Shown one piece after another: positions 1,994 to 50,504 of a stretch of 58,880 bases of DNA (position 1 is its first letter; every line of letters starts with the position of its first letter). The stretch comes from Neoechinorhynchus agilis. Its lineage: Eukaryota > Animalia > Acanthocephala. A program made the position numbers and the translations under genes. Where the stretch lies: positions 1 to 58,880 of the forward strand of contig JBMGUZ010000013.1 of the NCBI GenBank assembly GCA_051530055.1, in the 5' to 3' direction. The notes beneath the pieces were generated by a model. The model was not told where the DNA came from, ran no database searches, and saw only the letters and a program-made list of their open reading frames with translations.

Positions 1994-2069
1994 TCATATA
2001 TCATTGTCTTCGGGGTGAATTTGATTGTGCGTTGGCGAATCCTGCCCCCGGTGCTTTCGTTACTCATTT

Positions 2070-2116
2070 ATATTCGAAATATTTCACAAGGTTTTCCTTG
2101 CCTCTTCAGTCGATAT
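2070..2116 (-). ncRNA. Hammerhead copy in the inverted pLTR (intact core)
   Basis: Exact reverse complement of 4794-4840. Confidence 0.7.
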
Positions 2117-2165
2117 CTAAAATGGAGGATATGGACATCATGCACAGCCGGTCACGTCTGGGTGT

Positions 2166-2321
2166 CGCGGATCTGAGCTACACCCAGACGTGACCGGCTG
2201 TGCATGATGTCCATATCCTCCATTTTAGATATCGACTGAAGAGGCAAGGAAAACCTTGTGAAGTATTTCGAATATAAATGAGTAACGAAAGCACCGGGGG
2301 CAGGATTCGCCAACGCACAAT
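2166..2321 (+). repeat. 5' pseudo-LTR of PLE-1
   Basis: Identical to 4731-4886 except A>G at 2263; contains the ORF start ATG at 2278. Confidence 0.93.
2229..2275 (+). ncRNA. Hammerhead copy in the 5' pLTR with core mutation GAAA>GAAG
   Basis: Same motif as 4794-4840 but G at 2263 replaces A15.1. Confidence 0.6.
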
Positions 2322-4758
2322 CAAATTCACCCCGAAGACAATGATATATGACATTAAAAAACAGTATGGCGATAACTGTACGAAGGGCATTAGCCACCTG
2401 TTAAAAATGGAGATTAGGCTTCTTAGCATCAAGCAAGGCCTTAAATTCATGCAGACATGTAGGGACGAGAACTTAACACCGATGTGTGTCCGACTAAAAT
2501 CAGGCATAATTGGATTCCATGGATCATCACTGCAGCGCTCCTTTGAAAGACAATTATTGAACTTCGCCATTGTAGAGATGAGGAAACGAATATGTCACAT
2601 TAAGAACGATTCCATGAGCACATGGGAATATCTTACACGCACTCTTGACTATGACGATATTATGTGGCTAAATGGATACGTTAATGAGCGAATAAATGCC
2701 CAAACACTGGAGATTAAGAAACGACATAGCAAGAAGTTGGATCGACTGCGACCAAACATCCCTAAGGTAGATACATATTTTCTCAACAAGTCCAAACGAA
2801 TTTTTACGGAAGAGGAAGATGCCTTATTGAGCAAAGGTCCTGATTACATTGTTAAACGGCGAATATGTGAAACCCAGATTAGATGTGACACCGAGCTACT
2901 CATACATACCGCTCCAAACGTAACCTGTGAAGCAGCAGAATATGATATGATCGCGAGGGCCGGGAACAAGGGTATCTGTAATCCGGAATGCACAGTAATC
3001 AAACAACTTAAGAATGACCAGACAGTTACAATCCTTAAATCTGACAAAGGACGTGCCCTAGTTGCAGTAGATACTGAAGAGTATAAAGATGCGGCCCACA
3101 GTCTGCTGGACTCTGGCAAGTTCGTCAAACTCAGTGCCAATCCAACAGAAAAACGGGAGACACAACTAAATGCATTATTGAGGACTCTACGGAAAAATAA
3201 CTCGATCACTGAGCACTTTTACCAACAGACGAGGTCTTCCACAGCCAGGGCTTCCTTCTTGTATCTTTCCCCAAAAATACACAAACCAACGATACAATAC
3301 CGACCAATAATAGCCAGTTACAATGCCTTCAATCATCGTTTGGCCCGAAAAATCAATGCACTAATAAGAAGCGTCATGCCGAACACTCCGTCCTACATAG
3401 CTGACGGTCCTTCCTTTGCAACTCGAATGCGACTGGAAAAGTATGAACAGTGCAAATTCTTCACGGCCGACGTAACGTCCTTATTTACCAACATCCCACT
3501 TCAGGAGACAATTTCCATAGCAGCTGAACTTCTACACAATCAATGCGAAGAACCGCGCCTGGATAATAAAACGTGGACAACTCTACTGCAGTGGTGCACA
3601 TGCAAGACCGTTTTTGAATTCGATCAAGTTTTCTATGAACAACGCGACGGAGTTGCAATGGGTTCACCTCTGACACCCACTCTAGCTGATCTCTACATGA
3701 GAAGATGGGAAAACAACTTCATGAAGAAGCAACCCAACATCAAAAAGTGGTATCGCTATGTTGACGACGTGTTCATAGTCACTGATGATGAAACGAGCAT
3801 GAGAGACCTAAGCATTCCACTCAACATGCAGGATCCAAACATCCAGTGGTCAATGACTCAGGAAGATGAAGAGGGGGCTATCTCCTTTTTGGACGTAATG
3901 ATAAAACACGATGATAAAGGCAACATCAAAACACAGCTCTACCGCAAGCCAGGTATACCATGGGGTCCACCTCACTGGTCGAGCCACCAACCGTTCCACT
4001 ATAAAATAACAGCGGCAACGTCCTACTTCAAGAGGGCCAGGATGATTTCTTCAGAAAGCAGGGATTGGGAAGAAGAAAAACAAAGTATCACAAAAGTTCT
4101 CAGATCACGAGGCTTCCCTGAATATGCCATCAAAATCAGCCTGAAAAAGGCAACACATAGCGGGCATCGCAAGAAGAAGGATACCGCAAACATCTCCCCC
4201 AAATACGCTGGCTTCAACCACATAAGTGACAATGCGACCGGAAAACTGAGGCGCCTGAACTACCTCGTTCCAAATCTCTTTATCTACAACAAACGGGGCG
4301 CATCCATTGCGGGCATTCTCAAGAGGAAACCCAGTCAAGAGGCAAAATCAGGGATATACAAAATCCCATGTGCAGAATGCCCAAAGGTCTACATTGGACA
4401 AACCATGCAAGGGATCGGAAAGCGGATCTCGCAGCACAAACAAGCATGCAGGACATTCGACAAATCCTCTGCCATATCGAACCACCAGCAAACAATCCAG
4501 CACAGGGTAGATTTCGAAAAGGCGGCATTCCTAACCAGGGAACCGAATCTGAGGAGAAGACTGATTCTGGAGGCCATTCACATCCGAGGAAATTCGACGA
4601 TGGAAGGCAACAAATCTAACCATACGCTGGTGCTACCAATGTTGCGTAGCATGACGGGCAAATTAGTCGGCAACAAACCGCAAGAGGTGTGCGCGGATGG
4701 AACTCCCCACACTTCGGGTATTAGCAAACCCGCGGATCTGAGCTACACCCAGACGTGA
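2278..4758 (+). CDS. Penelope-like reverse transcriptase + GIY-YIG endonuclease (826 aa)
   Basis: RT motifs LYLSPKIHK..YRPII, ADVTSLFTNIP, GVAMGSPLTPTLADLYM, WYRYVDDVF, ISFLDV, LYRKP; GIY-YIG motifs GIYKIPCAECPKVYIGQT, RISQHK, LEAIHI..N. Confidence 0.96.
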   Translation: MSNESTGGRIRQRTIKFTPKTMIYDIKKQYGDNCTKGISHLLKMEIRLLSIKQGLKFMQTCRDENLTPMCVRLKSGIIGFHGSSLQRSFERQLLNFAIVEMRKRICHIKNDSMSTWEYLTRTLDYDDIMWLNGYVNERINAQTLEIKKRHSKKLDRLRPNIPKVDTYFLNKSKRIFTEEEDALLSKGPDYIVKRRICETQIRCDTELLIHTAPNVTCEAAEYDMIARAGNKGICNPECTVIKQLKNDQTVTILKSDKGRALVAVDTEEYKDAAHSLLDSGKFVKLSANPTEKRETQLNALLRTLRKNNSITEHFYQQTRSSTARASFLYLSPKIHKPTIQYRPIIASYNAFNHRLARKINALIRSVMPNTPSYIADGPSFATRMRLEKYEQCKFFTADVTSLFTNIPLQETISIAAELLHNQCEEPRLDNKTWTTLLQWCTCKTVFEFDQVFYEQRDGVAMGSPLTPTLADLYMRRWENNFMKKQPNIKKWYRYVDDVFIVTDDETSMRDLSIPLNMQDPNIQWSMTQEDEEGAISFLDVMIKHDDKGNIKTQLYRKPGIPWGPPHWSSHQPFHYKITAATSYFKRARMISSESRDWEEEKQSITKVLRSRGFPEYAIKISLKKATHSGHRKKKDTANISPKYAGFNHISDNATGKLRRLNYLVPNLFIYNKRGASIAGILKRKPSQEAKSGIYKIPCAECPKVYIGQTMQGIGKRISQHKQACRTFDKSSAISNHQQTIQHRVDFEKAAFLTREPNLRRRLILEAIHIRGNSTMEGNKSNHTLVLPMLRSMTGKLVGNKPQEVCADGTPHTSGISKPADLSYTQT

Positions 4759-4886
4759 CCGGCTGTGCATGATGTCCATATCCTCCATTTTAGATATCGA
4801 CTGAAGAGGCAAGGAAAACCTTGTGAAATATTTCGAATATAAATGAGTAACGAAAGCACCGGGGGCAGGATTCGCCAACGCACAAT
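4731..4886 (+). repeat. 3' pseudo-LTR of PLE-1
   Basis: Direct repeat of 2166-2321; contains the ORF stop at 4756-4758. Confidence 0.93.
4794..4840 (+). ncRNA. Minimal type I hammerhead ribozyme in the PLE-1 3' pLTR
   Basis: ATATCGA-CTGAAGA-G-GCAAGG-AAAA-CCTTGT-GAAA-TA-TT-TCGAATAT: CUGANGA core, stem II hairpin, GAAA, palindromic AUAU in place of stem III, stem I ATA-TCGA/TCGA-A-TAT. Predicted cleavage between 4832 and 4833. Confidence 0.75.
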
Positions 4887-6414
4887 GTAACCTCAAAAAC
4901 GTTCCTTTTTCGATCCCTACGTTGTCTGGGATAAGCGTGATCATCATACCCACGCCTTTGCCGCATGTGTCAATTCTCCTATCGCGCAAAACCGCTCTAC
5001 CATCTTTGGCCCGACCCCTCGATTGCAATGGGCTATTTGTTAAATCTAATAGAATTTGCGATGAAGGCCTCCATGGTTCTCGCCTCTTCTATGAAGAAGC
5101 CTTCCAAGTTAATGAATTAGGCTACCATTCTGGTACAATTGAGACGGATTCTTTTCAGTCAGAGAGGTTGATAGATCCGACAAAATCAGGCATAGGCGAT
5201 CCACTGTAATATGATAGAATGTGGTTTTGGAGAAAATTCTCAACTTTCGGACGAATTGACGTCATTGAAACCATATCGATTATATAACGTTATGTTTTTT
5301 GATGTTTCGTGCGCGTTATATATTAAAAAACCTAGATATTCATGTAACCTCAAAAACGTTCCTTTTTCGATCCCTACGTTGTCTGGGATAAGCGTGATCA
5401 TCATACCCACACGCCTTTGCCGCATGTGTCAATTCTCTTATCGCGCAAAACCGCTCTACCATCTTTGGCCCGACCCCTCGGTTGCAATGGGCTCTTTGTT
5501 AAATCTAATAGAATTTGCGATGAAGGCCTCCATGGTTCTCGCCTCTTCTATGAAGAAGCCTTCCAAGTTAATGAATTAGACTACCATTCTGGTACAATTG
5601 AGACGGATTCTTTTCAGTCGGAGAGGTTGATAGATCCGACAAAATCAGGCATAGGCGATCCACTGTTATATGATAGAATGTGGTTTTGGAGAAAATTCTC
5701 AACTTTCGCTATCTCCTAATTAACCAAAATTAATTCTAGGAATTTGATCCGCACAACAAGAATATAATAATATAAGCCAAAATGTTGCATACAGCCGATA
5801 GTTTTGACAAATTTTGATCGAATTCATGAAGATTCGCGTGTGGTAACGCTGGAATCATCCTCGTAGAGAAATAAATTTTATGGACCAACTAGAAATAATC
5901 AATTCATTGGGCAAATAAAACCTAATGAGTTCTATAGACCAGCCGATGAGCAGCATTTCGGATTTAAAGAGGTTAAGGACAACCGCTTATAACATATCAG
6001 CCGTGATAAAAGGCCAGACGCTACGAGGTTGTTTACACTTCTACGAGCTGATCGAACTCTAACAGGAGATGAAAATTTATGCACTGATGGTTTTACAGCC
6101 TATATATTCTATGCAGGATTCTCACATATCATTAAGAATTTAGTTCAAAGCCCAGAATGTGACTGAGCGTTATTGGAAGTACATACTGTATTCAATAACC
6201 TTGGATTTTACAGAATCCCAATTCCATCAATATTCAATGACTGGTTTTCAGCAATTGGAACCTTTACAAGCAAGAATAATGATACGACTTTTACGTTTAC
6301 AGCAGCGCACCGAAGCAATGCGAGCCGTCGTCCCGGTATTTGCATCATTAGCAGCAGCTGTCCTCAACAGAGCAGCATTCTCTGCCTGTCAATAACTGAG
6401 AAGATATTTACAAT
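4887..6414 (+). repeat. Right copy of the duplicated A/B block
   Basis: Starts at gtaacctcaaaaacg (equals 637) right after the 3' pLTR; ends at gatatttacaatt (equals 1981-1993), the point where the left copy meets the element. Confidence 0.9.
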
Positions 6415-6489
6415 TGGATATCAACTTGTTGACCTTTCTACTCGAAGTCACCCATCATTCGCCGAATGGATCATTTTAATTTCCATATA

Positions 6490-13285: not shown

Positions 13286-13393
13286 AATTAGGAAATAAGA
13301 TTACTAAGCGCTGCTTGGTTGTTCAGCCGCCTGTTTTATCTGGTGATGATTGTTTGATAGACAATCCGACTGAAAGAGAGAGATTTTATTCAA

Positions 13394-13432
13394 ACACCGA
13401 GCTTTCGCCGTCCAACGGCTTCTTCAGGGTGT
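13394..13432 (-). ncRNA. Minimal type I hammerhead ribozyme at the 3' end of PLE-2
   Basis: Minus strand ACACC-CTGAAGA-A-GCCG-TTGGA-CGGC-GAAA-GC-TC-GGTGT: perfect 5-bp stem I, 4-bp stem II, palindromic AGCU stem III, CUC cleavage triplet. Confidence 0.82.
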
Positions 13433-14890
13433 AATCTGCAATGCGAGTGGAGGTTCACATGAGATTCATGACGGCAGACAACTCATCCTTCTGGTTAATG
13501 AGTGTCCTACCGACCGATGCCCGCTAGAGTCCTCACGATCCCGGGTCTCTCGGGATATGATCAGCGCTTCCGCTATCGACAGTTCGACGGGATCCTGCGC
13601 TTTGTACATTATGCGCGTGGACAGCTGAACTGTTCCATCCGGGTGGACTCGCGAATAATGTTTCGCCCACGGTGTCGTCACATACGATTGCGCACTTGGG
13701 TTCAACGAGTTTCGTACATGCTCGGTTACTCTTTGGCGAAGTGGCCTTTCTGTTTTGCCCACGTACGTGACCAAGTGGCCACGGTCAATCCGACACCGTT
13801 CACACCGGATCTCGTAGACCACACTGCTCTGATCGCACATCTTCCAGTCACGATCAATGGCTTGCTGACGCTCCTCGTCCATCCTCGCACCTGCTGCGTA
13901 TCTGCACATTAGGCACGACCGAGGGCATTCCTGATGATCCTCATGATGCCTCGTTCTCGTCAGCATCCTCCGCAGCGTTCTACACCCTCTGTGCACAATA
14001 CGCACATTCAACCCTGCTTGCCTGGGCAGTACTTTAACTCTCTTCGTGAATATTTCACTCACGTACGGAATTCGTAGGATCGGCCTATCGTCCTTTCGTT
14101 CCCTCATGGGTCCAGCGTCTCGTCTAATTCTATTTTCCACTTCTCGCTGGAATCCTTCGATCTCCTCTGTCGAATATCCGTTGTCCGCGAAGATCTTGTT
14201 TACTGCTTCGACCGCTCCACGCTTCGCGTCCCACGACGATGAGCAGGTGGTTGCCGATTTATGCATACCAGCGTATATCGCCGCTTTCATCGCCCAAGGA
14301 TGGTGAGAATCTCGGTGCATCACAATCGACTTCCTGCATGGCTTTCGATACCAATTGAAGTTGGACACATCGTCGGATTTGAAGCGGAGATTGAGGAATG
14401 GCAGATAGTCCGAAGGTTGGTCTCTCGTAACCCGAATCCTCCTATTCGAGTCCATTGAATTTAATAGTGATTCAATGGTATCGACCTCATCATCCTCGGT
14501 GAAGTTCAGCAACACATCGTCCACATAGCGGAGGTAAACTTGACTCGACGCTAAATGTGGATAGATGTGCAGTCTTTCCAGGTCCTCGAGGTAGAGGATG
14601 GCCAATACCGGAGCTAAACTATTTCCCATTGCGAGACCACGAACTTGCTTATATAGCTGGTTTCGATAACGAAAAAGGGTTGCACTTCAGTACCAATCGA
14701 GTCAGACCAATAACATCGTCTGGAAGTAGACCGAAGAGGTCATGAGGATCGAGCGGTAATCCATATGACGATCCGTCAAGTTTTCTATGCCCTCTCGCAA
14801 CAACAATTTTCTCTCTGTGTGGTCATCATCTCGCGAGGCACGACCGAGGGCATTCCTGATGATCCTCATGATGCCTCGTTCTCGTCGTCG
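13394..14890 (-). mobile_element. Second Penelope-like element (different family), 5'-truncated and rearranged; RT C-terminus + GIY-YIG
   Basis: YKQVRGLAMGNSLAPVLAILYL, YLRYVDDV, LPFLNL, WYRKP, YVGKTERPLRQRVTEH, IAEALII; hammerhead and AATAAA downstream of the ORF. Confidence 0.88.
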
Positions 14891-16614: not shown

Positions 16615-19557
16615 TTAACAAAAGTACAAGAGACCACTCAGGCGATCGCTGAGTGAAAGAATAAGAAACTTCAATTTCTTCTCTGTAGGTTTCACTTCGT
16701 GGCTCACCTTTTCATCTCCATTTTTGACAACCAAGTCATCTTCATAAAAATAATCTCGGACTGTTGGATCGCAGAGCTGCAAAAATTCTACATAATGTCT
16801 CGCCCGGAAAGCGACGTGATGGGCATAATAACAAGGTGCCGGGATTGAGACTGAACGAAAGCATTTAGCATACAAATGGCACAAATTAAAAGTTACTTGC
16901 ATAAGATTATTCTCATTAAATCCAATGGAATCATAGATTAATCTGTACCGCGTTGGTCTCGATGTTCCTTGGATTCCCGCGTGGCTCACCAGAAATGCAT
17001 CGACTATGGAATCCATGCAGACTTCTGGGGAATATACGGTTCCGGGAAGTGGATTTCCGTTGCGATCGCCGTCTCTTCGATCAGAAGGGAACATTCGGAG
17101 ATGATGCCGCTTCTGGACGACAACGACGCTGAGTTTAATCTCGTCCCCCATTCCTTCTTTTCGACAGGCTTCTATTATGCCATTGACTTCGAATCGATTG
17201 ACTAAGTCGAGTTGAGTATCGGAAACGCCATCTCGGTACAAAAGGATTCGGTCCGGCAAACATTTGTTTCGCTCTCGATACTTTCCCAGTATCCTTCGCA
17301 TTATTGTTTCTAAGTTATAAACAATTTCTATACTTGACTTTGAAGCTTGAGGATTTTTCTGAAGGGAAATCTCGGTAACATAGGAATGAGGAACAAAGTC
17401 AACCGAAGCTACAACGGCGGCTATCGAAACTCGGCTAAGGTGTCCTTGACTATTCAGAACCCGATGGGTAACATCGAGACCGACAAACATGGTCCTTCCG
17501 TAATTTCCAATTTGTGGATTAAACTTAAATGGCACTGGATTTCGTGTTAGACTCACGTTAACACCGCCGAGCTTTGCACAAAGTTTGTTACAAATATTTG
17601 CGATAACCTGACCGTCCGGATTACCGCTCCTATCTCGTCTTTTTATCGCTTTGTCAGTGATGAACTGAGTAATCGATCCGCTGACTAGTTCCGCAGCAGC
17701 CTTAACTGCTGAATATTGGTAGTTGTTCCGTCTTGCAAAAAAGAATGTCACTTTTGTAGTATTTCCTGATAAGATATATCGAGGAAATTGAACGTTGAAT
17801 TCGTCTCGATGCCACATATGACGATGTCCATTTTCAGTCAGATCGATTCCATATCTTCGTGCCGTTTCAATCAGCCTCTTTAAGAATTGCTGGACGCTAT
17901 CCTCGTCTATTGACAGATTATCCGGAAAAATGTAATAAGACCATGTCAAGTCTTTTCCAACTCCTTTAAAGAATGAAAATTCTTTACCGGCATTCCAGGC
18001 TCCATGATGCCTCTGATATGTTATTTGACCTTGAGAATGATAAATCATTGGTATCGGTAAAAGACCGGCATCGACTACAGCCATACGATCGGATACTTCG
18101 AGTCTCCATTCTTTAAAATATTTCGCACACTCGTTGTTCTTGTTTGATTGCAAATACATTAATTTCGAATCAATATTAAACTTCCTCTGAGTCGGAGAAA
18201 GTGTTGTTCTTTTAATAACATCCGCCATTTGATTCTTAAGTTCTTCGTTCTGTACCTTTCGTGCTGCGAGATATACAAGTTCCAATGGAACTACGGCATT
18301 TCCTCTTTTACCCGTCGCAACGGTCACAAAATGAGGCAAACAATCATGGCCGTAATGTTGTTTGAAAAATTGACCAACGCTAATATTCGAGTGACCATCG
18401 TCATTGTTTAAAACGAATTTGTATTCAAAAGGTGATTCCATCTTAAAGGAATTAAAGGTGGCGTACCGCTTATGCTTCCCTTCCGAATCATATTTTACAA
18501 TGATCTTTGTTCGGTCCTTCAAAAGTTCACTAACCGATTGTAATAATTGAGGATTAGTTTTGCTGGCGGTTAAATCGTCTTCCGATATTCCTTTTTTCCG
18601 GAGGAAATCAAGCAACGATATTTCGGGTGCGATAACTGCATTTGCGACATCGACATTCAATGCTAAAGCGTCGAATGCAATCACGGCACTGGCGAAGATT
18701 CCGTTAAAGAGTCCTTTGAATGAATCGAGTCGATGAGCAGGTGGATCATTTAAAGGAAAAAAAGATCTCCCAAAGTTAATTAGAAGATTCGATAGTGCGA
18801 ATTTAAAGACAATATCGATTATTGCCATCTGCGGACGGAGTGCAACAGATTTTCCGATCATGTTTCTTATCAATGCAATGTCCTGCTCCATATCGATTTC
18901 ATTGGTTTTCTTAAATATAACCAAATACTTTTCAGAGACGAGTATTGAACACTCATCGCTGCCTGTTGCGAAATCGCTTAGTGAGTAAACCACACGACCA
19001 CCGTTGTATACAGTTCGGTACTTGAATTCAGATTCACGATCATTTGCCATTTTCAATATCGCTTTTTTAATTATAATTCGCTGTTTTAATGAAGATAAGA
19101 CGTTTTCTCCGTTTGGGTTATTGACAACCAAACCTATATCTTTATCTTCAATCTTCACATCGTACTGCTTTACTCTGAAAGGAGTTGAATTGGTCAGTGG
19201 AAAATAATTGATCATCATTTTCATCGACTTATTTAATTTAATTTTTGTACAGTAAACATTTTTTGGACGTGTTTCCACGCTGCATTCTTGTCGCAGCGTA
19301 TTTATTTCAAAACATTCAAAATCATTAGGTTTAAAAGTATGGATCGACATCACTTCTTTTGCAATCAAGCCTATGAATTTATGGGATTCATCTATCGACA
19401 TATTAATTATTTTGCTTTCTTCATTATATTGTCTTTGTGGTTCTGCATCGTTTCCCCTTTGACCTTGATTTCTCTGGTACCGTCCACGGTTTGGCCATCT
19501 CCCACCTCGATATCTTCGGTTGCTTCCATTGTACCGATTGTTGTTATTGCTGGACAT
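16615..19557 (-). CDS. Argonaute (AGO-clade, divergent), single exon, 980 aa; PAZ-MID-PIWI with predicted catalytic DEDH tetrad
   Basis: PAZ (ISVGQFFKQHY..VVPLEL), MID (YSAVKAAAE..GSITQFI, NICNKLCAKLGGVN), PIWI (GLDVTH, SIEIV, LLYRDGVSD, QKRHHLR, FLVSHAGIQGTSRPTRY, SVSIPAPCYYAHHVA, terminal LYFC); RG-rich N-terminus. Confidence 0.96.
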   Translation of the reverse strand: MSSNNNNRYNGSNRRYRGGRWPNRGRYQRNQGQRGNDAEPQRQYNEESKIINMSIDESHKFIGLIAKEVMSIHTFKPNDFECFEINTLRQECSVETRPKNVYCTKIKLNKSMKMMINYFPLTNSTPFRVKQYDVKIEDKDIGLVVNNPNGENVLSSLKQRIIIKKAILKMANDRESEFKYRTVYNGGRVVYSLSDFATGSDECSILVSEKYLVIFKKTNEIDMEQDIALIRNMIGKSVALRPQMAIIDIVFKFALSNLLINFGRSFFPLNDPPAHRLDSFKGLFNGIFASAVIAFDALALNVDVANAVIAPEISLLDFLRKKGISEDDLTASKTNPQLLQSVSELLKDRTKIIVKYDSEGKHKRYATFNSFKMESPFEYKFVLNNDDGHSNISVGQFFKQHYGHDCLPHFVTVATGKRGNAVVPLELVYLAARKVQNEELKNQMADVIKRTTLSPTQRKFNIDSKLMYLQSNKNNECAKYFKEWRLEVSDRMAVVDAGLLPIPMIYHSQGQITYQRHHGAWNAGKEFSFFKGVGKDLTWSYYIFPDNLSIDEDSVQQFLKRLIETARRYGIDLTENGHRHMWHRDEFNVQFPRYILSGNTTKVTFFFARRNNYQYSAVKAAAELVSGSITQFITDKAIKRRDRSGNPDGQVIANICNKLCAKLGGVNVSLTRNPVPFKFNPQIGNYGRTMFVGLDVTHRVLNSQGHLSRVSIAAVVASVDFVPHSYVTEISLQKNPQASKSSIEIVYNLETIMRRILGKYRERNKCLPDRILLYRDGVSDTQLDLVNRFEVNGIIEACRKEGMGDEIKLSVVVVQKRHHLRMFPSDRRDGDRNGNPLPGTVYSPEVCMDSIVDAFLVSHAGIQGTSRPTRYRLIYDSIGFNENNLMQVTFNLCHLYAKCFRSVSIPAPCYYAHHVAFRARHYVEFLQLCDPTVRDYFYEDDLVVKNGDEKVSHEVKPTEKKLKFLILSLSDRLSGLLYFC

Positions 19558-23820: not shown

Positions 23821-24318
23821 GACTGTCTCCTTAGTAAAGATTATCGATTTTCCAGAATAGCGATCAGGTTTCAGAACAAGTTCAGCGATGTGTTGATGGC
23901 AAATAAATGGATATCCTGAAAGTGGAATGATTTTATTCTAGATTTTCAGGCGAAAATTCGATGCATTCATGTTTTTCATTTTAAGCAAAGAACACGCTGT
24001 CGACCTCGAGAATTACGAGACTTTGGACTGTCTTCTTAGTAAAGATTATCGATTTTCCAGACTTGTGATCAGGTTTCAGAACAAGTTCAGCGATGTGTTG
24101 ATGACAAATAAATGGATATCCTGTAAGCGGGATGATTTTATTCTAGATTTTCAGACCAAAATTCGATGCATTCATGTTTTTCATTTTAAGCAAAGAAGTT
24201 CATGCTGTCGACCTCGAGAATTACGAGACTTTGGACTGTCTTCTTAGTAAAGATTACCGATTTTTCAGACTAGTGATCAGGTTTCAGAACAAGTTCGGCG
24301 ATGTGTTGATGGCAAGTA
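23821..24318. repeat. Tandem repeat, ~205-208 bp unit, ~2.4 copies
   Basis: gactgtc(t/c)..cttagtaaagatta recurs at ~23821, 24026 and 24234. Confidence 0.85.
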
Positions 24319-25091
24319 AACGGCGTAGAGGATGCAATATTAACAAAATTAAATCATTTTTCTTTATTTTTGTGTGACCAAAAGAATATTAAACTGCCGC
24401 ATTCGATTATATTAGAAGGCACTTCGGTTTCCGCCAATGAGAGAAACGGAGAACCATAAATAGCATCGTGCATTGGGCAGCGAAGAGCATGTAAGAAATT
24501 TAAACCATCTTGGATAAAATGGAAGCTTAATCGGTATTTGTTTTAGAGTAATCTTCGAAATGATTTAAAGTTTATGAGTGCTGTGAACTCGAGTTGTAGG
24601 CAAAAAATCTGTTCTTGATTCGTTACAAAATCAGTAATAAAAATTTGAATAATAATCGAAATGCCGCAGCGCTCAGAGATATCCGAGAAGGGCCATCCGA
24701 AGAAGTTGTTGATAAAGAGCAAGGATTTTATGAACAATGTTACAATGTTTTTCACAAAAAGGCGTTCCCATTCTATGAAACAATCGACTATATGCGGGAT
24801 TTTTGCAATATAATTGGAATTCAAGCCAGAAAAACTTTCCTGATTTCAAGGAAACACTCGACGAATTGTTGCGGCGAAAGTGTGATTGTTAATGCGATTT
24901 AGAAACAATTGAAACGGGGAAAACAAGGGAGCAAACTTATATGAGCTTTTATATTTACATTCAAGCGATAGGAAGACCAAATCTGTGTTTATAAGTAAAA
25001 ATTAGATGTTTCAAAGAATCTAAAAATAAATGTATAAGCATTTTGTATCGAAAATAGACAAGTCTTGATTTTCAAACGCTACGAGGTTAAG

Positions 25092-25686: not shown

Positions 25687-26859
25687 CTAGTTGTTCAGTT
25701 GCGAGTCGTCCATTGTATTGGCGTCTTCGCCATTTTGTTCATTCGTTGTATCCACTGATTCTTCGTTTGATTTATCAAATACCAACAAATGCGATAAAGA
25801 TTTTTCCAATGGTTTCAATCCATACGACTTTTTAATCGATAGCTTCACCATAAATGATTGTCGCGAAACGTCGTAGCCGATAATCTTTGCGATTAATCGT
25901 TCCTTTTGTGCGAATCGGGTGTCCATTTGCCGAAACCGATACTCTAACGGTCCTTGAGCCATTTCTTTAGTTGAACACCCATCCAAATGACACTTAAAAA
26001 TCGTCTTTCGAATAGCGAGTATCGATGGAGAAGCAACGTAGCATATTAATTTAGAAACAAACCGTATCTTTCCGGAATCTACTTCTTCGACAAGAAATCT
26101 ATGACCCTGGTCCTCCAGGATCTTTACTCTTTTGAATGATTTATCGGAATCTTTGACGAGACAATAATGGCCAGGATAAAGTTCTCTCGATACCTCCTCA
26201 GCGTGACGTCCATTTGAATTAATTAATTCTCGATTCAGATAAGTTCGCCATTCCTGTACAAATTGGGTTATAAAAATATTTTCAATGTTGCAGAAGTGCA
26301 CCAGCTTATAAATAATTTCGATATTAATCAAATATTTGCCGTCCTCGTCCTTTCTTATAAAATCACAAAAGACATTCCCTTCAAATGCTGCCTCGGGAAC
26401 TTGTGAGTGGTTTTGATTTACAAATACGGAATTGCCATGTTGGTTTTCCAATTTTAGTTTACATGGAAGGGCCAGCCTCGGAATGGAGTTGAAAATTCTT
26501 TTAACCGGTCGTAGATTTACCAATGGAAGCCACTCTTGGTGACCGTAATCAATGTAAAAGACTTTGAATGAAGATGTCAGAATATTCACTTCTGTAATTT
26601 GACCTCGGTACCACTTTCCGTCCACAAGGGACTTGCCAATACATTTGGAATTAAGACCATACACAAGAAATTGATTGAAACGAAGAGATTCATAAACATT
26701 TCGTAGACCGATCTCAAGATCCAATCGATTTTTGAAGATTAAATTTGGTAGAAGGTAAATATTTTGAGGATTATCCATGTAACTGACTTGACAGTAGACA
26801 GAATCTTGTAGAGAAACTATAAACTGCGGGTAATCCGCTGGAGGTACAAAAGTGCTCAT
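25687..26859 (-). CDS. Tandem extended-Tudor domain protein (TDRD-like, small-RNA pathway type)
   Basis: Tudor 1: VSYMDNPQNIY..DGKWYRGQI..KVFYIDYGHQE..LRP..IPRLALPCKL. Tudor 2 is degenerate: GHYCLVK..FKRVKI..FLVEEVDSG..FKCHL. Confidence 0.88.
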   Translation of the reverse strand: MSTFVPPADYPQFIVSLQDSVYCQVSYMDNPQNIYLLPNLIFKNRLDLEIGLRNVYESLRFNQFLVYGLNSKCIGKSLVDGKWYRGQITEVNILTSSFKVFYIDYGHQEWLPLVNLRPVKRIFNSIPRLALPCKLKLENQHGNSVFVNQNHSQVPEAAFEGNVFCDFIRKDEDGKYLINIEIIYKLVHFCNIENIFITQFVQEWRTYLNRELINSNGRHAEEVSRELYPGHYCLVKDSDKSFKRVKILEDQGHRFLVEEVDSGKIRFVSKLICYVASPSILAIRKTIFKCHLDGCSTKEMAQGPLEYRFRQMDTRFAQKERLIAKIIGYDVSRQSFMVKLSIKKSYGLKPLEKSLSHLLVFDKSNEESVDTTNEQNGEDANTMDDSQLNN

Positions 26860-27907: not shown

Positions 27908-29062
27908 TTAGTATTTATTTCGCAAAACCGCCGGAACAGTGAGTTGTTCGCCCGCTAACAAATCTCGAACGGTGAAAAGAGCCATTGCTTGTCTGTCTGT
28001 TCCATTAGATTTAAAGTGAACCTTCTGAATGAGCAAATTGGCATTGCTCTGAGAGCGATGAAAAAGATGAGACACGTTGGTGATTGGCGCTACGTTTCCA
28101 TTTCTCTCCTTATCGCTGTCCAGCTGACAAACAAAATAACCCTTTGGAAGATCGTGGTTCACACGGACACCCAATCTTTTAGTTCTATGAACAAATACCT
28201 CCAAATAAGCTCGAATTCCTTGGCTGACCAATGTGTTTGGACAGTGCCCTGGACATTTACACGCATCGCCACATTCTTGAACTCCTCGTGGAATTCCACC
28301 TTCGGGCAATCTCAAATATTCGTAAGTATTTTGCTTCGAAGTCAGTGTGTTTTCTAAACTAAAATGCTCGCAAACCGGAGAAATGTAATGTAAATGAAGC
28401 ATACGAAAAACTCGAATATGGATCTGTGAATTTAAGATTTAAATAATCAATCTTTACGATTGCTTTACGTAGATCCTTTTTTAGTTTAGGTAAAATATCT
28501 TAGATTCTACGATAAAAAAACGAATTTCATTCTTAAACAGATCTGTAAATTTTCTGAAGGTATCAATTATTGCATTTTAGTATCCGGCAATTCTTCAAAA
28601 TTAACGTAGAATTCAATGGGAAGTTTAATCCATGGTGCGAATTGCATTTGTTTAGACTAAACGCCACTCTTTTAAACTCGCCTAACGCCAACATTTGAGA
28701 GCATTTCTAGGTATCAAATTTGGCGAAACTTGCGAGGATCCTGGTAGACGATAGAAAACATTCACATCAAAATGACAACGATGCTCATTGCAGAGTGGAA
28801 TTTCTTTTCTTTCCAGACCATTCGAAATATCTTTATCCACGACATTTTTCCCGCTTCCAGCGTACTCATAATCGATGTCCACATTTTCTTGGAAAGTAAA
28901 TAAATCGATCGATAAATGTGACCTTGTCGTTTCCAACTGTTCGAAAACTTGACGGATTTTGTAGAATGATCGAAAACAAGGCGATACGTAAAACACTTTT
29001 TTGGTCGTCCCGGTTCGATTTATCATGCGTTTCCAACCGTAGATTAAAAATATTTCAGGCAA
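27908..29062 (-). CDS. SETDB1/2 (Eggless)-like MBD + pre-SET + SET protein, divergent; 5' end not located
   Basis: MBD: LIYGWKR..VFYVSPC.RS....QVFEQL...LSIDLFTF; DISNGLERKEIPLCN; pre-SET: YEYLRL..GVQECGDACKCPGHCPNTLVSQG; SET: LEVF..LGVR..DLPKGYFVC..NVSHLFHRS..NLLIQKV..GEQLT. Confidence 0.75.
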
Positions 29063-31894
29063 AGAAAACCTTGTGAAATATTTCAGGCAGGGAAAACCTT
29101 GTGAAATATTTCAGGTAAAGAAAACCGTGTGAAATATTTCAGGCAAGGAAAACCTTGTAAAATATTTCAGGCAGGGAAAACCTTGTGAAATATTTCAGGT
29201 AAAGAAAACCTTGTGAAATATTTCAGGCAGGGAAAACCTTGTGAAATATTTCAGGCAGGGAAAACCTTGTGAAATATTTCAGGTAAAGAAAACCGTGTGA
29301 AATATTTCAGGCAGGGAAAGCCTTGTGAAATATTTCAGGCAGGGAAAGCCTTGTGAAATATTTCAGGCAGGGAAAACCGTGTGAAATATTTCAGGCAGGG
29401 AAAGCCTTGTGAAATATTTCAGGCAAGGAAAACCGTGTGAAATATTTCAGGCAAGGAAAACCTTGTGAAATATTTCAGGCAGGGAAAACCTTGTGAAATA
29501 TTTCAGGTAAAGAAAACCTTGTGAAATATTTCAGGCAGGGAAAACCTTGTGAAATATTTCAGGCAGGGAAAACCTTGTGAAATATTTCAGGCAGGGAAAA
29601 CCTTGTGAAATATTTCAGGCAAGGAAAGCCTTGTGAAATATTTCAGGCAGGGAAAACCTTGTGAAATATTTCAGGCAGGGAAAACCTTGTGAAATATTTC
29701 AGGCAGGGAAAACCTTGTGAAATATTTCAGGCAAGGAAAACCGTGTGAAATATTTCAGGCAGGGAAAACCTTGTGAAATATTTCAGGCAGGGAAAACCTT
29801 GTGAAATATTTCAGGCAAGGAAAGCCTTGTGAAATATTTCAGGCAGGGAAAACCTTGTGAAATATTTCAGGCAGGGAAAACCTTGTGAAATATTTCAGGC
29901 AGGGAAAACCTTGTGAAATATTTCAGGCAGGGAAAACCTTGTGAAATATTTCAGGCAGGGAAAACCTTGTGAAATATTTCAGGCAGGGAAAACCTTGTGA
30001 AATATTTCAGGCAGGAAAACCTTGTGAAATATTTCAGGCAGGGAAAACCTTGTGAAATATTTCAGGCAGGGAAAACCTTGTGAAATATTTCAGGCAGGGA
30101 AAACCTTGTGAAATATTTCAGGCAGGGAAAACCTTGTGAAATATTTCAGGCAAGGAAAACCTTGTGAAATATTTCAGGCAGGGAAAACCTTGTGAAATAT
30201 TTCAGGCAGGGAAAACCTTGTGAAATATTTCAGGCAGGGAAAACCTTGTGAAATATTTCAGGCAGGGAAAACCGTGTGAAATATTTCAGGCAGGGAAAAC
30301 CTTGTGAAATATTTCAGGCAGGGAAAACCTTGTGAAATATTTCAGGCAGGGAAAGCCTTGTGAAATATTTCAGGCAGGGAAAACCTTGTGAAATATTTCA
30401 GGCAGGGAAAACCGTGTGAAATATTTCAGGCAGGGAAAACCTTGTGAAATATTTCAGGCAGGGAAAACCTTGTGAAATATTTCAGGCAGGGAAAACCTTG
30501 TGAAATATTTCAGGCAAGGAAAACCTTGTGAAATATTTCAGGCAGGGAAAACCTTGTGAAATATTTCAGGCAGGGAAAGCCTTGTGAAATATTTCAGGCA
30601 GGGAAAACCTTGTGAAATATTTCAGGCAGGGAAAACCTTGTGAAATATTTCAGGCAGGGAAAACCTTGTGAAATATTTCAGGCGGGAAAACCTTGTGAAA
30701 TATTTCAGGCAGGGAAAACCTTGTGAAATATTTCAGGCAGGAAAACCTTGTGAAATATTTCAGGCAGGGAAAACCGTGTGAAATATTTCAGGCAGGGAAA
30801 GCCTTGTGAAATATTTCAGGCAGGGAAAACCTTGTGAAATATTTCAGGCAGGGAAAACCTTGTGAAATATTTCAGGCAGGGAAAACCTTGTGAAATATTT
30901 CAGGCAGGGAAAACCTTGTGAAATATTTCAGGCAGGGAAAACCTTGTGAAATATTTCAGGCAAGGAAAACCTTGTGAAATATTTCAGGCAGGGAAAGCCT
31001 TGTGAAATATTTCAGGCAGGGAAAACCTTGTGAAATATTTCAGGCAGGGAAAACCTTGTGAAATATTTCAGGCAGGGAAAACCTTGTGAAATATTTCAGG
31101 CAGGGAAAACCTTGTGAAATATTTCAGGCAGGGAAAACCTTGTGAAATATTTCAGGCAGGGAAAACCTTGTGAAATATTTCAGGCAGGGAAACCTTGTGA
31201 AATATTTCAGGCAGGGAAAACCTTGTGAAATATTTCAGGCAGGGAAAACCTTGTGAAATATTTCAGGCAGGGAAAACCTTGTGAAATATTTCAGGCAGGG
31301 AAAACCTTGTGAAATATTTCAGGCAGGGAAAACCTTGTGAAATATTTCAGGCAGGGAAAACCTTGTGAAATATTTCAGGCAGGGAAAACCTTGTGAAATA
31401 TTTCAGGCAAGGAAAACCTTGTGAAATATTTCAGGCAGGGAAAACCTTGTGAAATATTTCAGGCAGGGAAAACCTTGTGAAATATTTCAGGCAAGGAAAA
31501 CCTTGTGAAATATTTCAGGCAGGGAAACCTTGTGAAATATTTCAGGCAGGGAAAACCTTGTGAAATATTTCAGGCAGGAAAACCTTGTGAAATATTTCAG
31601 GCAGGGAAAACCTTGTGAAATATTTCAGGCAGGGAAAACCTTGTGAAATATTTCAGGCAGGGAAAACCTTGTGAAATATTTCAGGCAAGGAAAGCCTTGT
31701 GAAATATTTCAGGCAGGGAAAACCTTGTGAAATATTTCAGGCAGGGAAAACCTTGTGAAATATTTCAGGCAAGGAAAACCTTGTGAAATATTTCAGGCAG
31801 GGAAAACCTTGTGAAATATTTCAGGCAGGGAAAGCCTTGTGAAATATTTCAGGCAGGGAAAACCTTGTGAAATATTTCAGGCAGGGAAAACCTT
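29048..31894 (+). repeat. Tandem array of a 28-bp unit AGGCA(G/A)GGAAAACCTTGTGAAATATTTC, ~100 copies
   Basis: 2847 bp / 28 is about 102. Each unit contains a stem-loop (gcaRgg-aaaa-ccttgt), and the array carries the 12-bp palindrome TGAAATATTTCA once per period. The unit at 29449-29476 is identical to PLE-1 4807-4834. Confidence 0.98.
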
Positions 31895-32449
31895 TACTTT
31901 TTATTGCGAATTATCAAATGATTTATTTATTTGATAATTTTCGGCCTTCGCTTAGGCTTTTTTCGGTCCATACAATTTATTGATTTCCATATTTCGGCAG
32001 CCAATGAAACACTAACAATCGTACCGAAATATCGGACCCAATTAATTTTGCTTCAAATTTTCCGCCATATAAAAACACAATTCAATTTAACAAAATTGAT
32101 GACTTTCGGATCAAAACGCAAAATAAAAGCGAAATGAACGAGCAATAATTTTTATTGATCGATTATTGATTGCGTCAATGGGTTCGTATTTCCATAATGA
32201 GTACAAAGTGTTTAGACTAAAGTCTTGTAACTTTTCCTCTTTTTTTAAATTTTTCGATGTTGCTTATTGAACCGACTCAAAAAATCGGAAATCGTGACTA
32301 TATCGTCGGTTTCAGTGAATTTCAATTTTAAATAGCCATTGTTTCGCAGAAGGATTTTAATTTTTAGTAGTGATCGGAAATGCAACAAAATCTTCTCATC
32401 AAACGATACTTTTCTCTCTAAAAACTTCATTATTGAAATCAAACGGGAT

Positions 32450-39024: not shown

Positions 39025-42000
39025 TCATTGAACTGAAAACATTTTCCCTAATCGGCTATCTTTGTCCAAGTTCAGCATGTTTCTAATCTCAAACAACGAC
39101 AGGCCACTTGCTAGAAGTTTTGTCCTCACAATCGTGAGTAGAGACGGAGTATTAGAAAGATGAGCGGCGAGTTCATTTAGCTGATGTTCCGTTTTAAGAG
39201 GGAAATTGTTTGTTTCTTCAGTAAAAAAGGATGTACTTAGATAACTGACTGTTCTCTTAAAAGGAAAACAGACGCATATCTGATAAAGAAGAAGAATAAA
39301 ATTCGAAACAATACTTCCAGTGTACGGGGCAGTTGACTTCATCTCGTTGTATTTCAAGATTAATAGATCGTCTTCAGGTTGTCTATCGTTACTATTGGCC
39401 GAACTAAGATGTTCCTGGAGTTTGGTAAGTTGGTTGGTATGCAACACTTCGTATTCGTATTTAATGTAGTCCAACACTGCAACAACGAATCGCTTTGAGT
39501 CAAACATTTCGGTCGATGGCACGAATAACCTAAACATGGTTTTTCCGATTTAACAGGTTTCAACGAATATTTCTTAAGAAAAACAGCTACAAAACGTTTT
39601 TCTTTGCACAAAATACAGGAGACATCTAGCTGATATTTCCAAATCCTTTTTTTTCGGATTTGTGATATCTGTCATAGTTCTTGAGTTATACGTCTTTCAA
39701 TTTTTACACAAACCAACTTGATTATCTATATCAAAACATCAATTTATCGAAGCAAACCCGATTGATCAGTTCAAATTTCTCTTTTCATACTTCGTACCGT
39801 CTTTCACGATGCACGTAATTTCAAAAGGAAGAAATATAAAGTCTGAATTCAAACGGAAACATTATTTTCATTAAATTTTAGTCTATCCCTTTCTTGTCCG
39901 GCGTATTTTTAGGCATAAACCCAAACAAATTACACCAGAGAAGTGATATAACCACATAGTCTCCAATGCACGGTTAAAAGTTTGTACATTCCTCCGGATC
40001 CTCAGATACCTCCAGGAGGCGGGACTCATCACTGAGTTTCCTCCCACCAACGAGATATTTCGTCTGCTTTGGCTGTGCGTCATTGGCGGTAACGGATTCG
40101 AACCGTTATATCACTTCTCTGATGTAATTGGTTTGGCTTTATGCCTAAAAATAAGCCGAACAAGAAGGGACAAACTAAAACCTAATCATGATAACAAAAC
40201 CGGCTTGCCAGTAAAAACTTAAAATTGAAACATTGTTTGAATCTCTTAAATCGTTAGCGATTATTTAAGACAGAAACTTCATCTATAAATGGAAAATCAA
40301 CGTGTTATGATCTCCTTAGTTTTGAAGTTGACAATTGGGAGAGGGCTGTTGTAATGACAAAAAGAAAATCTTTATTTCCGAGAGTTTTCTCCGTCTTAAG
40401 GCTTCTTCAGGAATTGTTAAAGTGTTTTATGAGTGCGGACAAAATACTTTAACAATTCCTCAAGAAGCCGTAAGACGGCGAAAGATCTCGGAAATAAGGA
40501 TTCAATTTATCATTACAAGAGTTCAAGCAAATGACGATATGTGAGGTACCCGGGGAATGTGATTATTGGAATTATTGTTTAGAAGTCTTCATTCGCGGTG
40601 AATGATTTCTTTTCGATTAAAAAGACGTTCTGTGTACCTTGTCGGATTACCGGGTGTAGACCTAAACAATAATTCCAAGAAATGACGATATGTGAGGTAC
40701 CGGGGGAATGTGATTATTGGAATTATTGTTTAGAAGTCTTCATTCGCGGCAAATGATTTCTTTTCGATTAAAAAGGCGTTCTGTGGACCTCGTCGGATTA
40801 CCGGTTTCAAGAGTTCAAGTTTTCCATTTTCGAAAACAGACTTAGGTCCCATCGTAAGGAAAGTCGCTCACCTGCTAGGAGAATAATTACTCAATATCGT
40901 CCATAAAGCACTCATGTACCTATTAAGTAAGTGCCTTCCACCACAGAGCCCGCCTGATAACAGATTGTCGATACATGAGAATTGAAAGCCATGATCTATC
41001 AATTGATGCATAATATTTAGTTTAGTATCATCCGAGTGAACGGCCAATTTAAATGCGGCATCCATTAGAGTGCCACGGATACGGTATTGCCGTAACTCCT
41101 TCATTTGATCTTTGCTAATAGAATCCAAGATGGCATCGAATGCGTTAACGTAGCTGTGTTTTATACATTTCAAAAGAACCATAAACAATTGATCACTTGA
41201 ATGGGTAGATTTGTTAATCAGAAGTCGACAAATGTATGCGTTGTTATTGGAAGCTGCAATATGGAGCGGAAGCTTAAATTGCCCAAATCCTTGATGAACG
41301 TTGCGATGGTGGCTTAGGTAGAGCTCGCGATAGTTTAAGAATAATGATTGCCATCGAATGAATTAAATTTGGCCATTTTTTGTGAAAATAATTTTCTCAA
41401 CTTCTTGATTAAAACACAAACTGTTGATTATAGGCACCAATAACCTTTCAAGGTACTTACAAATGTTATTTAGAAGTCTTCACCCTTCATCATTTTTAGA
41501 ACTGTAAAGTCTCTAGTACAAAAATTATTTACGGGTTGAATATTTCTAAATAATATCGATATTTCAACGCGCCTGCCATTTCATTATGACGGAAAAATTG
41601 AAGGAATTTACTGAATTCGATATTTCAGCACAATGGTGTGAATTTATAAGTGTTGTAAATTTATTTTAATCAAACAGATCTAACTCGAGGATTTACTTTT
41701 AAATTCAATTGATCACCGAGATTTAATTAAGATTTAACGAATAAACCTAACGTTTTAAGGGATTTAGATACTCGAAAAACCTGAGCGTTGCTGTTAATCT
41801 GTGAGCCTGAGTTTGTAAAGGAAGTCAGAAGCTATGATCGTGTATTTTAAACTTTTGACAATAAAAAGTTCCAAAGCAATTTCTCTACATCATATAGATT
41901 TTACCGATCTGTGTTAGGGAAGCGAATGTATCACTCCTCAAATACGTCCTTGGGTGGGGAATATAAGTGAATTTCCTTCAGCGGTATTTCGTCCTCTTTT

Positions 42001-46459: not shown

Positions 46460-47130
46460 AGTTTAAAGAAGAAATCGTAGGTTTTGAAAACGAATCGGAA
46501 AAACACAAGAAGGCTAAGAAATATGTTCAAGAATAAACAGATTAAGCGAGACAAAATAAAGGAGAGAAATTTAAAGAAGAAATCGTAGGTTTCTTTTAAA
46601 CAAAAAAGGGAAAAACAAGAATGCTAAGAAATATGTTCAAGAATAAACAGATTAAGCGAGACAAAATAAAGGAGAGAAATTTAAAGAAGAAATCGTAGGT
46701 TTCTTTTAAACAAAAAAGGGAAAATAACAAGAATGCTAAGAAATATGTTCAAGATTAAACAGATTAAGCGAGACAAAATAAAGGAGAGAAATTTAAAGAA
46801 GAAATCGTAGGTTTCTTTTTGAAAACGAATCGGAAAAACACAAGAAGGCTAAGAAATATGTTCAAGAATAAACAGATTAAGCGAGACAAAATAAAGGAGA
46901 GAAATTTAAAGAAGAAATCGTAGGTTTCTTTTAAACAAAAAAGGGAAAAACAAGAATGCTAAGAAATATGTTCAAGAATAAACAGATTAAGCGAGACAAA
47001 ATAAAGGAGAGAAATTTAAAGAAGAAATCGTAGGTTTCTTTTAAAAAACGAATCGAAAAAACAAGAATGCGAAGAAATTTGTTCAAAACTAAACAGACCA
47101 AGCGAGACAAAATGAAAAAAGTAAAGATTT
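46460..47130. repeat. Tandem repeat, ~110-bp unit, ~6 copies, upstream of the SREK1-like ATG
   Basis: gaagaaatcgtagg recurs every 110-114 bp. Confidence 0.92.

Positions 47131-48024: not shown

Positions 48025-50504
<2,480 letters not shown>

Follow-up and report, generated by a model that had tools for sequence, protein, structure and literature searches.

A tandem array of about 100 copies of a 28-bp unit was identified in the genome of Neoechinorhynchus agilis (Acanthocephala), and its unit is identical to part of a predicted hammerhead ribozyme in a Penelope-like element (PLE), here named PLE-1, on the same contig. The window analyzed is the whole contig JBMGUZ010000013.1 (58,880 nt) of assembly GCA_051530055.1. 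The array is probably a transposon-derived minisatellite, its copies having arisen by DNA-level amplification. Its identity to PLE-1, its anatomy, its uniform junctions and its PLE-like right flank are observed directly, and from these we infer a single duplication followed by amplification. Two further N. agilis contigs, JBMGUZ010000028.1 (L001) and JBMGUZ010000036.1 (L002), were also analyzed over 36 kb, so that 95 kb were examined with the window.

Anatomy of the 28-bp array

An earlier note on this DNA had described a 28-bp array of about 100 copies. Tandem Repeats Finder (TRF) likewise reports one array at 29048-31894, with a period of 28, 101.9 copies and 96% matches. When the sequence is split at the invariant motif ATATTTC, the array spans 29047-31907 and comprises ~102 units arranged head to tail. 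The array and its right flank consist of the following parts:

29047..29056, + strand: left edge, a 10-nt partial unit AAAATATTTC (unit positions 19-28, G19>A; from the sequence and the parsing)
29057..31878, + strand: 101 head-to-tail 28-bp units, six of them 27 bp (TRF, pattern search, unit typing)
31879..31907, + strand: degenerate last unit, AGGCAGGGAAAACCTT followed by TACTTTT (for GTGAAA) and TATTGC (for TATTTC) (sequence; local alignment of the right flank to PLE-1)
31908..31921, + strand: PLE-1-like continuation GAATTATCAAATGA, matching PLE-1 4835-4846 (GAATATAAATGA) 12/12 with two 1-nt insertions

The majority unit type, AGGCAGGGAAAACCTTGTGAAATATTTC, accounts for 65 units and carries A6G relative to the PLE-1 28-mer. 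The exact PLE-1 28-mer, AGGCAAGGAAAACCTTGTGAAATATTTC, is present in seven array units, for example at 29449-29476. The remaining unit types carry A12G, T15G, or C4T with G7A, and the six 27-nt units each miss a single base from the GGG or AAAA run. All unit junctions are uniform (102/102 read ATATTTC/AGG), the junction sequence between adjacent units being ATATTTCAGGCA. Non-consensus units are commoner among the first 20 units (12/20 versus 24/81, p=0.018), and no significant higher-order periodicity was detected in the array. The array adjoins a SET open reading frame (ORF) at a distance of ~650 bp, and its site lies between this ORF and a DUF4139 ORF, both with Pfam domains.

The assembly is a MaSuRCA/Flye hybrid of Illumina and Oxford Nanopore Technologies (ONT) R9.4 data from ~50 pooled worms, with very scant HiFi data (PMC12690905). 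The copy number of the array and its 27-nt unit variants are not reliable, since they derive from a hybrid ONT assembly and ONT sequencing typically errs in homopolymers. The existence of the array is nevertheless probable, because it contains 13 full-length unit types in aperiodic order and has unique flanks, and because the long reads that entered the assembly (≥5 kb) could span its 2.8 kb.

Relationship of the unit to PLE-1

The 28/28 identity between the array unit and positions 4807-4834 in the 3' pseudo-long terminal repeat (pLTR) of PLE-1, as claimed in the earlier note, was confirmed. A pattern search of the window for the 28-mer outside the array retrieved exact copies at 4807-4834 (+) and 2076-2103 (-) and a copy with one mismatch at 2242-2269 (+), while no 28-mer match is expected by chance according to 100 shuffles. 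In BLAST, PLE-1 and the array match over 28 nt at most. The 28-mer copies and the coding region of PLE-1 are located as follows; the descriptor mentioned here is our own pattern for minimal hammerhead ribozymes (min-HHRs):

2076..2103, - strand: exact 28-mer in the inverted arm (pattern search, BLAST, descriptor)
2242..2269, + strand: 28-mer copy in the upstream pLTR, A14>G (GAAGT) (pattern search; the descriptor does not find this copy)
2278..4758, + strand: PLE-1 ORF, 826 aa, uninterrupted (ORF list; Pfam RVT_1 and GIY-YIG)
4807..4834, + strand: source 28-mer in the PLE-1 3' pLTR (hand numbering, pattern search)

The PLE-1 ORF has 418 PLE-type homologues, the best with 32% identity and none of them from N. 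agilis, and an exact-protein look-up found it on no other contig. Self-BLAST shows that the pLTRs at 2166-2321 and 4731-4886 are direct repeats with 99.4% identity, and that an inverted 5'-truncated PLE-1 arm is located at ~1994-2165. Such a combination of pLTRs and an inverted arm is the usual layout of PLEs (PMC8557442). The inverted arm extends ~28 nt past the 3' end of the direct copy, and this extension matches the 30-40-nt 'tail' described for PLEs. PLE-1 looks young and is possibly active; its 826-aa ORF is uninterrupted and its pLTRs are 99.4% identical. The hammerhead copy in the upstream pLTR is predicted to be inactive, since A14 is an invariant core base.

The DNA flanking PLE-1 is repeated within the first 6.5 kb with 96-99% identity (635-750, 4885-5000 and 5342-5459; 1900-1993 and 6322-6415). 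PLE-1 is inside a locally duplicated region, and no clean empty site of the element was found. An Rfam match to mir-549 at 2131-2214 (-), with 46.9 bits against a gathering score of 93, is a false positive that corresponds to the hairpin of the PLE-1 inverted arms.

The 28-mer is part of a predicted minimal hammerhead

The sequence evidence supports a derivation of the 28-mer from a predicted PLE hammerhead. The assignment rests on a hand fold and on the min-HHR descriptor, and the motif consists of the following elements:

4797..4836, + strand: predicted PLE-type minimal hammerhead (hand fold and descriptor)
4797-4800 with 4833-4836, + strand: stem I, UCGA/UCGA (descriptor, fold)
4801-4807, + strand: CUGAAGA box (A9 = 4807), starting 43 nt after the stop codon of the ORF (end 4758)
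4808, + strand: unpaired G between A9 and 10.1
4809-4814 with 4819-4824, + strand: stem II, 6 bp, loop AAAA (descriptor, fold)
4825-4828, + strand: GAAA box, with G12-A14 at 4825-4827 (descriptor)
4828-4831, + strand: AUAU at the 'helix III' position, inside the 10-nt palindrome GAAAUAUUUC
4832, + strand: U17, followed by U1.1 and C1.2 at 4833-4834; cleavage predicted between 4832 and 4833

The minimum-free-energy RNA fold of 4789-4846 consists of stem I and stem II and nothing more, and a cofold of two RNA copies pairs their GAAAUAUUUC palindromes. The descriptor has three matches in the window, at 4801 (+), 2109 (-) and 13427 (-), all of which adjoin PLE ORFs. Only 0.1 matches are expected per dinucleotide shuffle, and none of 200 shuffles reached three. 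The hammerhead models of Rfam 15 gave no match at gathering score in the whole window or at E≤10 in 1800-5100, and other Rfam matches (small nucleolar RNA, internal ribosome entry site) were discarded as noise. Rfam hammerhead models expect helix III. Published PLE minimal hammerheads were defined by a descriptor rather than by Rfam models, and are characterized by a long helix II, an unpaired base between A9 and 10.1 and a helix I of 4-5 bp (PMC4209133). They are without helix III and carry a palindrome instead, by which two copies act as a dimer (PMC4209133).

The motif at 4797-4836 shares most of these properties. It has the CUGANGA and GAAA boxes in type I order, the unpaired G4808, a 6-bp helix II, a 4-bp helix I after H17 and a palindromic AUAU at 15.2-16.2, and it lies in a pLTR beside a PLE ORF, with a frequency above chance. 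The conserved G10.1-C11.1 pair was not found; a G4809-U4824 wobble takes its place, whereas the motifs of a second PLE in the window (PLE-2) and of L002 have G-C.

In agreement with the earlier note, the 28-mer spans A9, stem II, GAAA and the predicted cleavage site plus 2 nt, and it lacks the CUGANG box. The descriptor finds nothing in the array, and because the C3-G8 box and both stem I strands are absent from the unit, the array is predicted to be unable to self-cleave and to have no ribozyme activity. Slippage between the two stem I halves (TCGA, a direct repeat 36 nt apart) was considered as a source of the unit and rejected; it would give a 36-bp unit with the whole ribozyme, which is not what the array shows.

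The unit begins with AG, continues with a 16-nt hairpin and finishes with a perfect 10-nt palindrome, GAAATATTTC, and is thus almost wholly self-complementary. The palindrome ends at the 3' edge of the unit, a point that is also the centre of TTC/GAA, and the predicted cleavage site is located elsewhere. As single-stranded DNA, three units fold with z=-3.4, and neighbouring palindromes pair across one unit. The majority A>G change, at unit position 6, pairs with T15 as a G-U pair and keeps the hairpin, as had been noted before. This G-U pair is a single event that gives no evidence of selection. The hairpin structure in the array is not under selection, since T15G and G7A disrupt hairpin pairs without compensation. 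The array as a whole shows no sign of selection in its sequence.

Flanks of the array

The right flank continues beyond the array as PLE-1 does, and the continuation begins in register, exactly where PLE-1 leaves the unit. In a local alignment with an 80x120 search space, the score of the full 20-nt right-flank match was reached by 5/2000 dinucleotide shuffles. Among window 30-mers, a fraction of 0.001 reach the right-flank score of the full 20-nt match, and 0.008 that of the non-unit part taken by itself. Aligned to PLE-1 globally with free ends, the right flank gave no significant result (0.097), because the 7 nt adjoining the array mismatch; only the local in-register tests are significant. 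To the right of AAATGA there is no PLE-1 similarity and no recognizable PLE-1 3' terminus, and the PLE-like flank ends ~40 nt short of the 3' end used by intact PLE-1 (4886-4888). The possibility that the right flank ends at a 'tail-less' PLE 3' end was rejected, the PLE-1 tail being on the inverted arm, ~28 nt beyond 4888.

The left flank has no significant similarity to the PLE-1 upstream sequence or to the unit. A resemblance seen by eye (CATG..CCA..TAGAT) and a 7-nt GATTTAT repeat considered as a target-site duplication were both dropped, as the left-flank comparisons were not significant, and no convincing target-site duplication was seen at the array. Because the right flank continues as PLE-1 in register, the direction of derivation appears to run from the PLE to the array, and the sequence suggests that a short PLE-1-like fragment carries the array on its 5' side and that the array has grown in place.

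Probable origin of the array at the DNA level

The array is head to tail and its unit is a contiguous piece of a transposon, as in transposon-derived minisatellites. Satellite DNA from tandemized transposon parts is a recognized phenomenon, with Penelope elements among the sources (2025 review, PMC12692304). The starting point at this intergenic site would have been a PLE-1-family pLTR fragment reaching from A9 of the min-HHR to ~14 nt past the 28-mer. The first 28 bp of the fragment would then have been duplicated once by a non-homologous DNA event, such as repair of a break by end joining or template switching during replication, creating the junction TTTC/AGGC. That this junction arose once and was then copied is indicated by the 102/102 identical junctions. 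The junction-bearing unit may have been amplified to ~100 copies by slippage, unequal sister-chromatid exchange and possibly rolling-circle replication of excised DNA circles. With two copies present, single strands could take up a fold in which each palindrome pairs with its neighbour across exactly one unit, which would favour slippage; the self-complementarity of the unit would thus account for the instability of the array. The interior would have been homogenized while edge units escaped homogenization and decayed, and degenerate edge units and a variant-rich stretch of the first 20 units are expected on this basis.

Several points weigh against this account. The left edge is a partial unit on non-PLE DNA. 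If 4807-4834 had simply been duplicated in place, AGGC should follow directly on the original left flank, so that an extra deletion or rearrangement must be assumed. The polarity of the locus, with its 3' end in PLE sequence and its 5' end mid-unit, also fits a 5'-truncated reverse-transcribed copy. The PLE-like right flank is short (14 nt past the unit) and its test was post hoc. The first duplication has no explanatory microhomology, and the evidence comes from one array locus.

The same polarity is used by a second account, which we regard as unlikely. Here the tandem 28-mers first formed inside the pLTR of a PLE-1-family master copy elsewhere, as an internal minisatellite of the sort known from other retroelements, and the locus is a 5'-truncated retrotransposed or relocated copy, perhaps further expanded in place. 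This fits a right end anchored in PLE sequence and a left end lying mid-unit in non-PLE DNA. PLE families lengthened by internal tandem repeats are reported (PMC8557442), and an element with a disrupted ribozyme could still move, since cleavage is dispensable for PLE insertion in vitro (PMC11167929). However, the right flank stops ~40 nt before the PLE-1 3' end (4886-4888) and has no terminus, so a normal target-primed insertion end is missing, and a convincing target-site duplication was not seen. An internal tandem of the 28-mer, the search for which had been proposed in the earlier note, is also absent from the PLE-1 copy and its inverted arm in the window. The master-copy account is a close variant of amplification in place at the DNA level.

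The earlier note had proposed a different mechanism, in which the reverse transcriptase (RT) of the PLE built the array by reiterated (telomerase-like) or rolling-circle copying of a short pLTR or ribozyme RNA, with DNA-level exchange afterwards. Such copying could take the form of telomerase-like translocation, of repeated template jumps or of rolling-circle copying of a 28-nt RNA circle. We found no positive support for such copying in the sequence evidence and consider this mechanism improbable. In its favour, PLE RTs are the closest relatives of telomerase RT (PMC8557442) and initiate internally on their own RNA without primer homology (PMC11167929), and it has been proposed that circular RNAs of whole PLEs are copied over more than one unit (PMC4209133). 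The polarity is also compatible with right-to-left synthesis ending mid-unit. The lack of direct repeats around the 28-mer in the PLE, which is flanked by ctgaag on one side and gaatat on the other, was confirmed and is in keeping with an RT origin, but the argument drawn from it against slippage does not hold, as the lack counts equally against the telomerase-like model. In such a model the cDNA end (the complement of AGGC) must pair 3' of C1.2, where the RNA reads GAAU; with CUGAAG and GAAUAU as the flanks of the 28-mer, AGGC is not repeated 3' of the unit.

The positions of the unit ends present a further difficulty for the RT mechanism. They are at 4807 and 4834, whereas cleavage is predicted between 4832 and 4833, so that no pathway would yield a 28-nt RNA with this junction, be it linear or circular. 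We know of no reaction that cuts before A9, and thus none that gives an RNA 5' end there. The array units are without CUGA and are predicted to be unable to cleave, and a DNA palindrome ends at the 3' edge of the unit. Variable junctions are the usual outcome of independent template jumps, whereas 102/102 are identical here. In vitro work on the one PLE so studied, an anole element whose protein was purified from E. coli, placed the start of synthesis in an AC-rich stem-loop downstream of the ribozyme and showed that cleavage can be dispensed with (PMC11167929). The PLE-1 3' end (4886-4888) is in an AC-rich stretch and fits such a start site, but the array flank does not reach it; the array is not at an RT start site and lies between two Pfam-domain ORFs. 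The other PLE families in the 95 kb are also without such arrays.

A more specific version of the RT mechanism is, in our estimate, very improbable: the PLE-1 RT, working on hammerhead-folded or dimerized pLTR RNA, would stall in the catalytic core at A9/G8, switch back to the partner RNA where its GAAAUAUUUC palindrome ends, and lay down 28-nt repeats in one insertion. If true, a telomerase-like activity of a retrotransposon enzyme would have been caught in a genome, and the ribozyme fold would be linked to the definition of a template boundary.

It is highly improbable that the array is mostly an assembly artefact, produced when the hybrid assembler inflated or mis-joined a short repeat, as the MaSuRCA/Flye build (R9.4 plus Illumina, ~50 pooled worms, hardly any HiFi) and the six units deviating solely by a 1-nt homopolymer deletion might suggest, given that the 13 aperiodic full-length unit types and the heterogeneous left end are unlike a collapsed or looped repeat, reads of ≥5 kb are able to span 2.8 kb, and the array stands within one contig with unique flanks on either side.

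Other PLEs, tandem arrays and neighbouring genes

PLE-2 is a second, unrelated PLE remnant at 13399-14701 (-), with an ORF fragment that has a weak GIY-YIG match. In a tblastn comparison with PLE-1, the region 14174-14701 (-) shares 28% identity over 181 aa, and no homologues of the 387-aa PLE-2 ORF were found at E≤1e-10. Its hammerhead motif is as follows:

13399..13427, - strand: min-HHR of PLE-2, CUGAAGA a GCCGU ugg ACGGC GAAAGCUC/GGUG (descriptor)

The architecture of this motif is the same as that of PLE-1, and no array derived from it was found. The search for matching arrays from other PLE families, also proposed in the earlier note, retrieved no 28-mer-like array in the 95 kb examined. 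L001 and L002 contain neither the 28-mer nor PLE-1 in the 36 kb analyzed, which do not cover the array site. A scan of Joint Genome Institute (JGI) metagenomes for a 27-mer gave 0 matches.

L002 carries at 13385-13700 a tandem of two 158-bp units that are 99% identical, each with a complete min-HHR, and an inverted partner copy is located ~650 bp away (14370-14400). It resembles a retrozyme or a tandem of pLTRs. A fourth min-HHR family occurs at ~14707 (-) of L002, so that the motif is represented in N. agilis by at least four sequence families, two of them on L002.

Six further tandem arrays with units of 102-205 bp were identified in the window, at 23821-24320, 40524-40804, 46462-47113, 48447-49068, 50761-54588 and 57592-57911. 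The largest consists of 21 copies of a 181-bp unit. These six and the 28-bp array account for ~15% of the contig. No match to a PLE or to any other sequence in the 95 kb was obtained for the six. Because these six arrays are unrelated to PLEs, local tandem duplication is common here without any reverse transcriptase.

An Argonaute/Piwi ORF at 16615-19557 (-; 980 aa, uninterrupted), a Tudor ORF at 25687-26859 (-) and a Pre-SET/SET ORF at 27908-28402 (-) are arranged side by side in the window. The Argonaute ORF shares 96% identity with an N. agilis protein. L001 is a rearranged mosaic with 93-98% identical copies of Argonaute, Tudor and other window segments, indicating that this Argonaute/Tudor/SET gene cluster is recently duplicated. 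Both L001 and L002 are mosaics of recent duplicates of other parts of the window. Two ORFs with beta-adaptin domains (appendage domain, Adaptin_N) were also predicted, at 54517-55485 (-) and 55807-57012 (-), and the appendage ORF meets the 181-bp array at its 3' end, where the two overlap over ~70 nt.

Comparison with known repeats and significance

The statement in the earlier note that no such satellite had been described is too strong. Satellites made of transposon parts, including Penelope, are documented (PMC12692304), and hammerhead tandem repeats derived from PLE pLTRs are known (PMC7229834; bioRxiv 10.64898/2026.07.22.740005). Like the transposon-derived satellites of PMC12692304, the array consists of a short non-coding internal piece identical to the element, repeated head to tail, with a homogenized interior and degenerate edges, and a transposon fragment at the site is the likely seed. 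Unlike them, its unit is only 28 bp and a sub-fragment of a ribozyme. One locus is known, and the term satellite, in the sense of an abundant genome component, goes further than the data.

Classical hammerhead satellites include newt satellite 2, Schistosoma Sm-alpha and cave-cricket pDo500, and the units of retrozymes and hammerhead satellites are ~150-400 bp. With animal retrozymes the array shares tandem repeats related to PLE pLTRs with type I hammerhead sequence (PMC7229834; bioRxiv 10.64898/2026.07.22.740005). Animal retrozyme units contain the whole hammerhead, self-cleave and circularize (PMC7229834). In contrast, the array unit lacks a complete hammerhead (the CUGANG box and stem I are absent) and is predicted to be non-cleaving and non-circularizing.

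The PLE-1 motif itself resembles PLE minimal hammerheads (PMC4209133) in its long helix II, unpaired A9/10.1 base, 4-bp helix I and AUAU palindrome, and in its presence in both pLTRs beside the ORF. It differs from them in the G-U pair at 10.1-11.1, which is usually a conserved G-C; Rfam models miss the motif, and its activity is a prediction. Kinship of the enzyme family, and a product that would be a tandem array of short units, link the locus to telomerase and to telomere-associated endonuclease-deficient PLEs (PMC8557442; Athena, PMC7943196). However, the PLE-1 template has no alignment repeat, the array is internal between genes with no terminal position evident, and PLE-1 has an endonuclease.

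The array is therefore best filed among transposon-derived minisatellites, with an unusually well-preserved parent and a curious content. Acanthocephalan genomes are rich in PLEs (PMC7943196), and for one member of this group, PLE-type min-HHRs belonging to at least four sequence families are documented here. A bearing on the mechanistic kinship of PLE and telomerase RTs would follow only if the RT mechanism were shown experimentally, which is not where the present evidence points. The array offers a clean, datable case of a very short transposon fragment seeding a minisatellite, in which the intact parent, with 99.4% identical pLTRs, is on the same contig and the apparent original flank is still visible.

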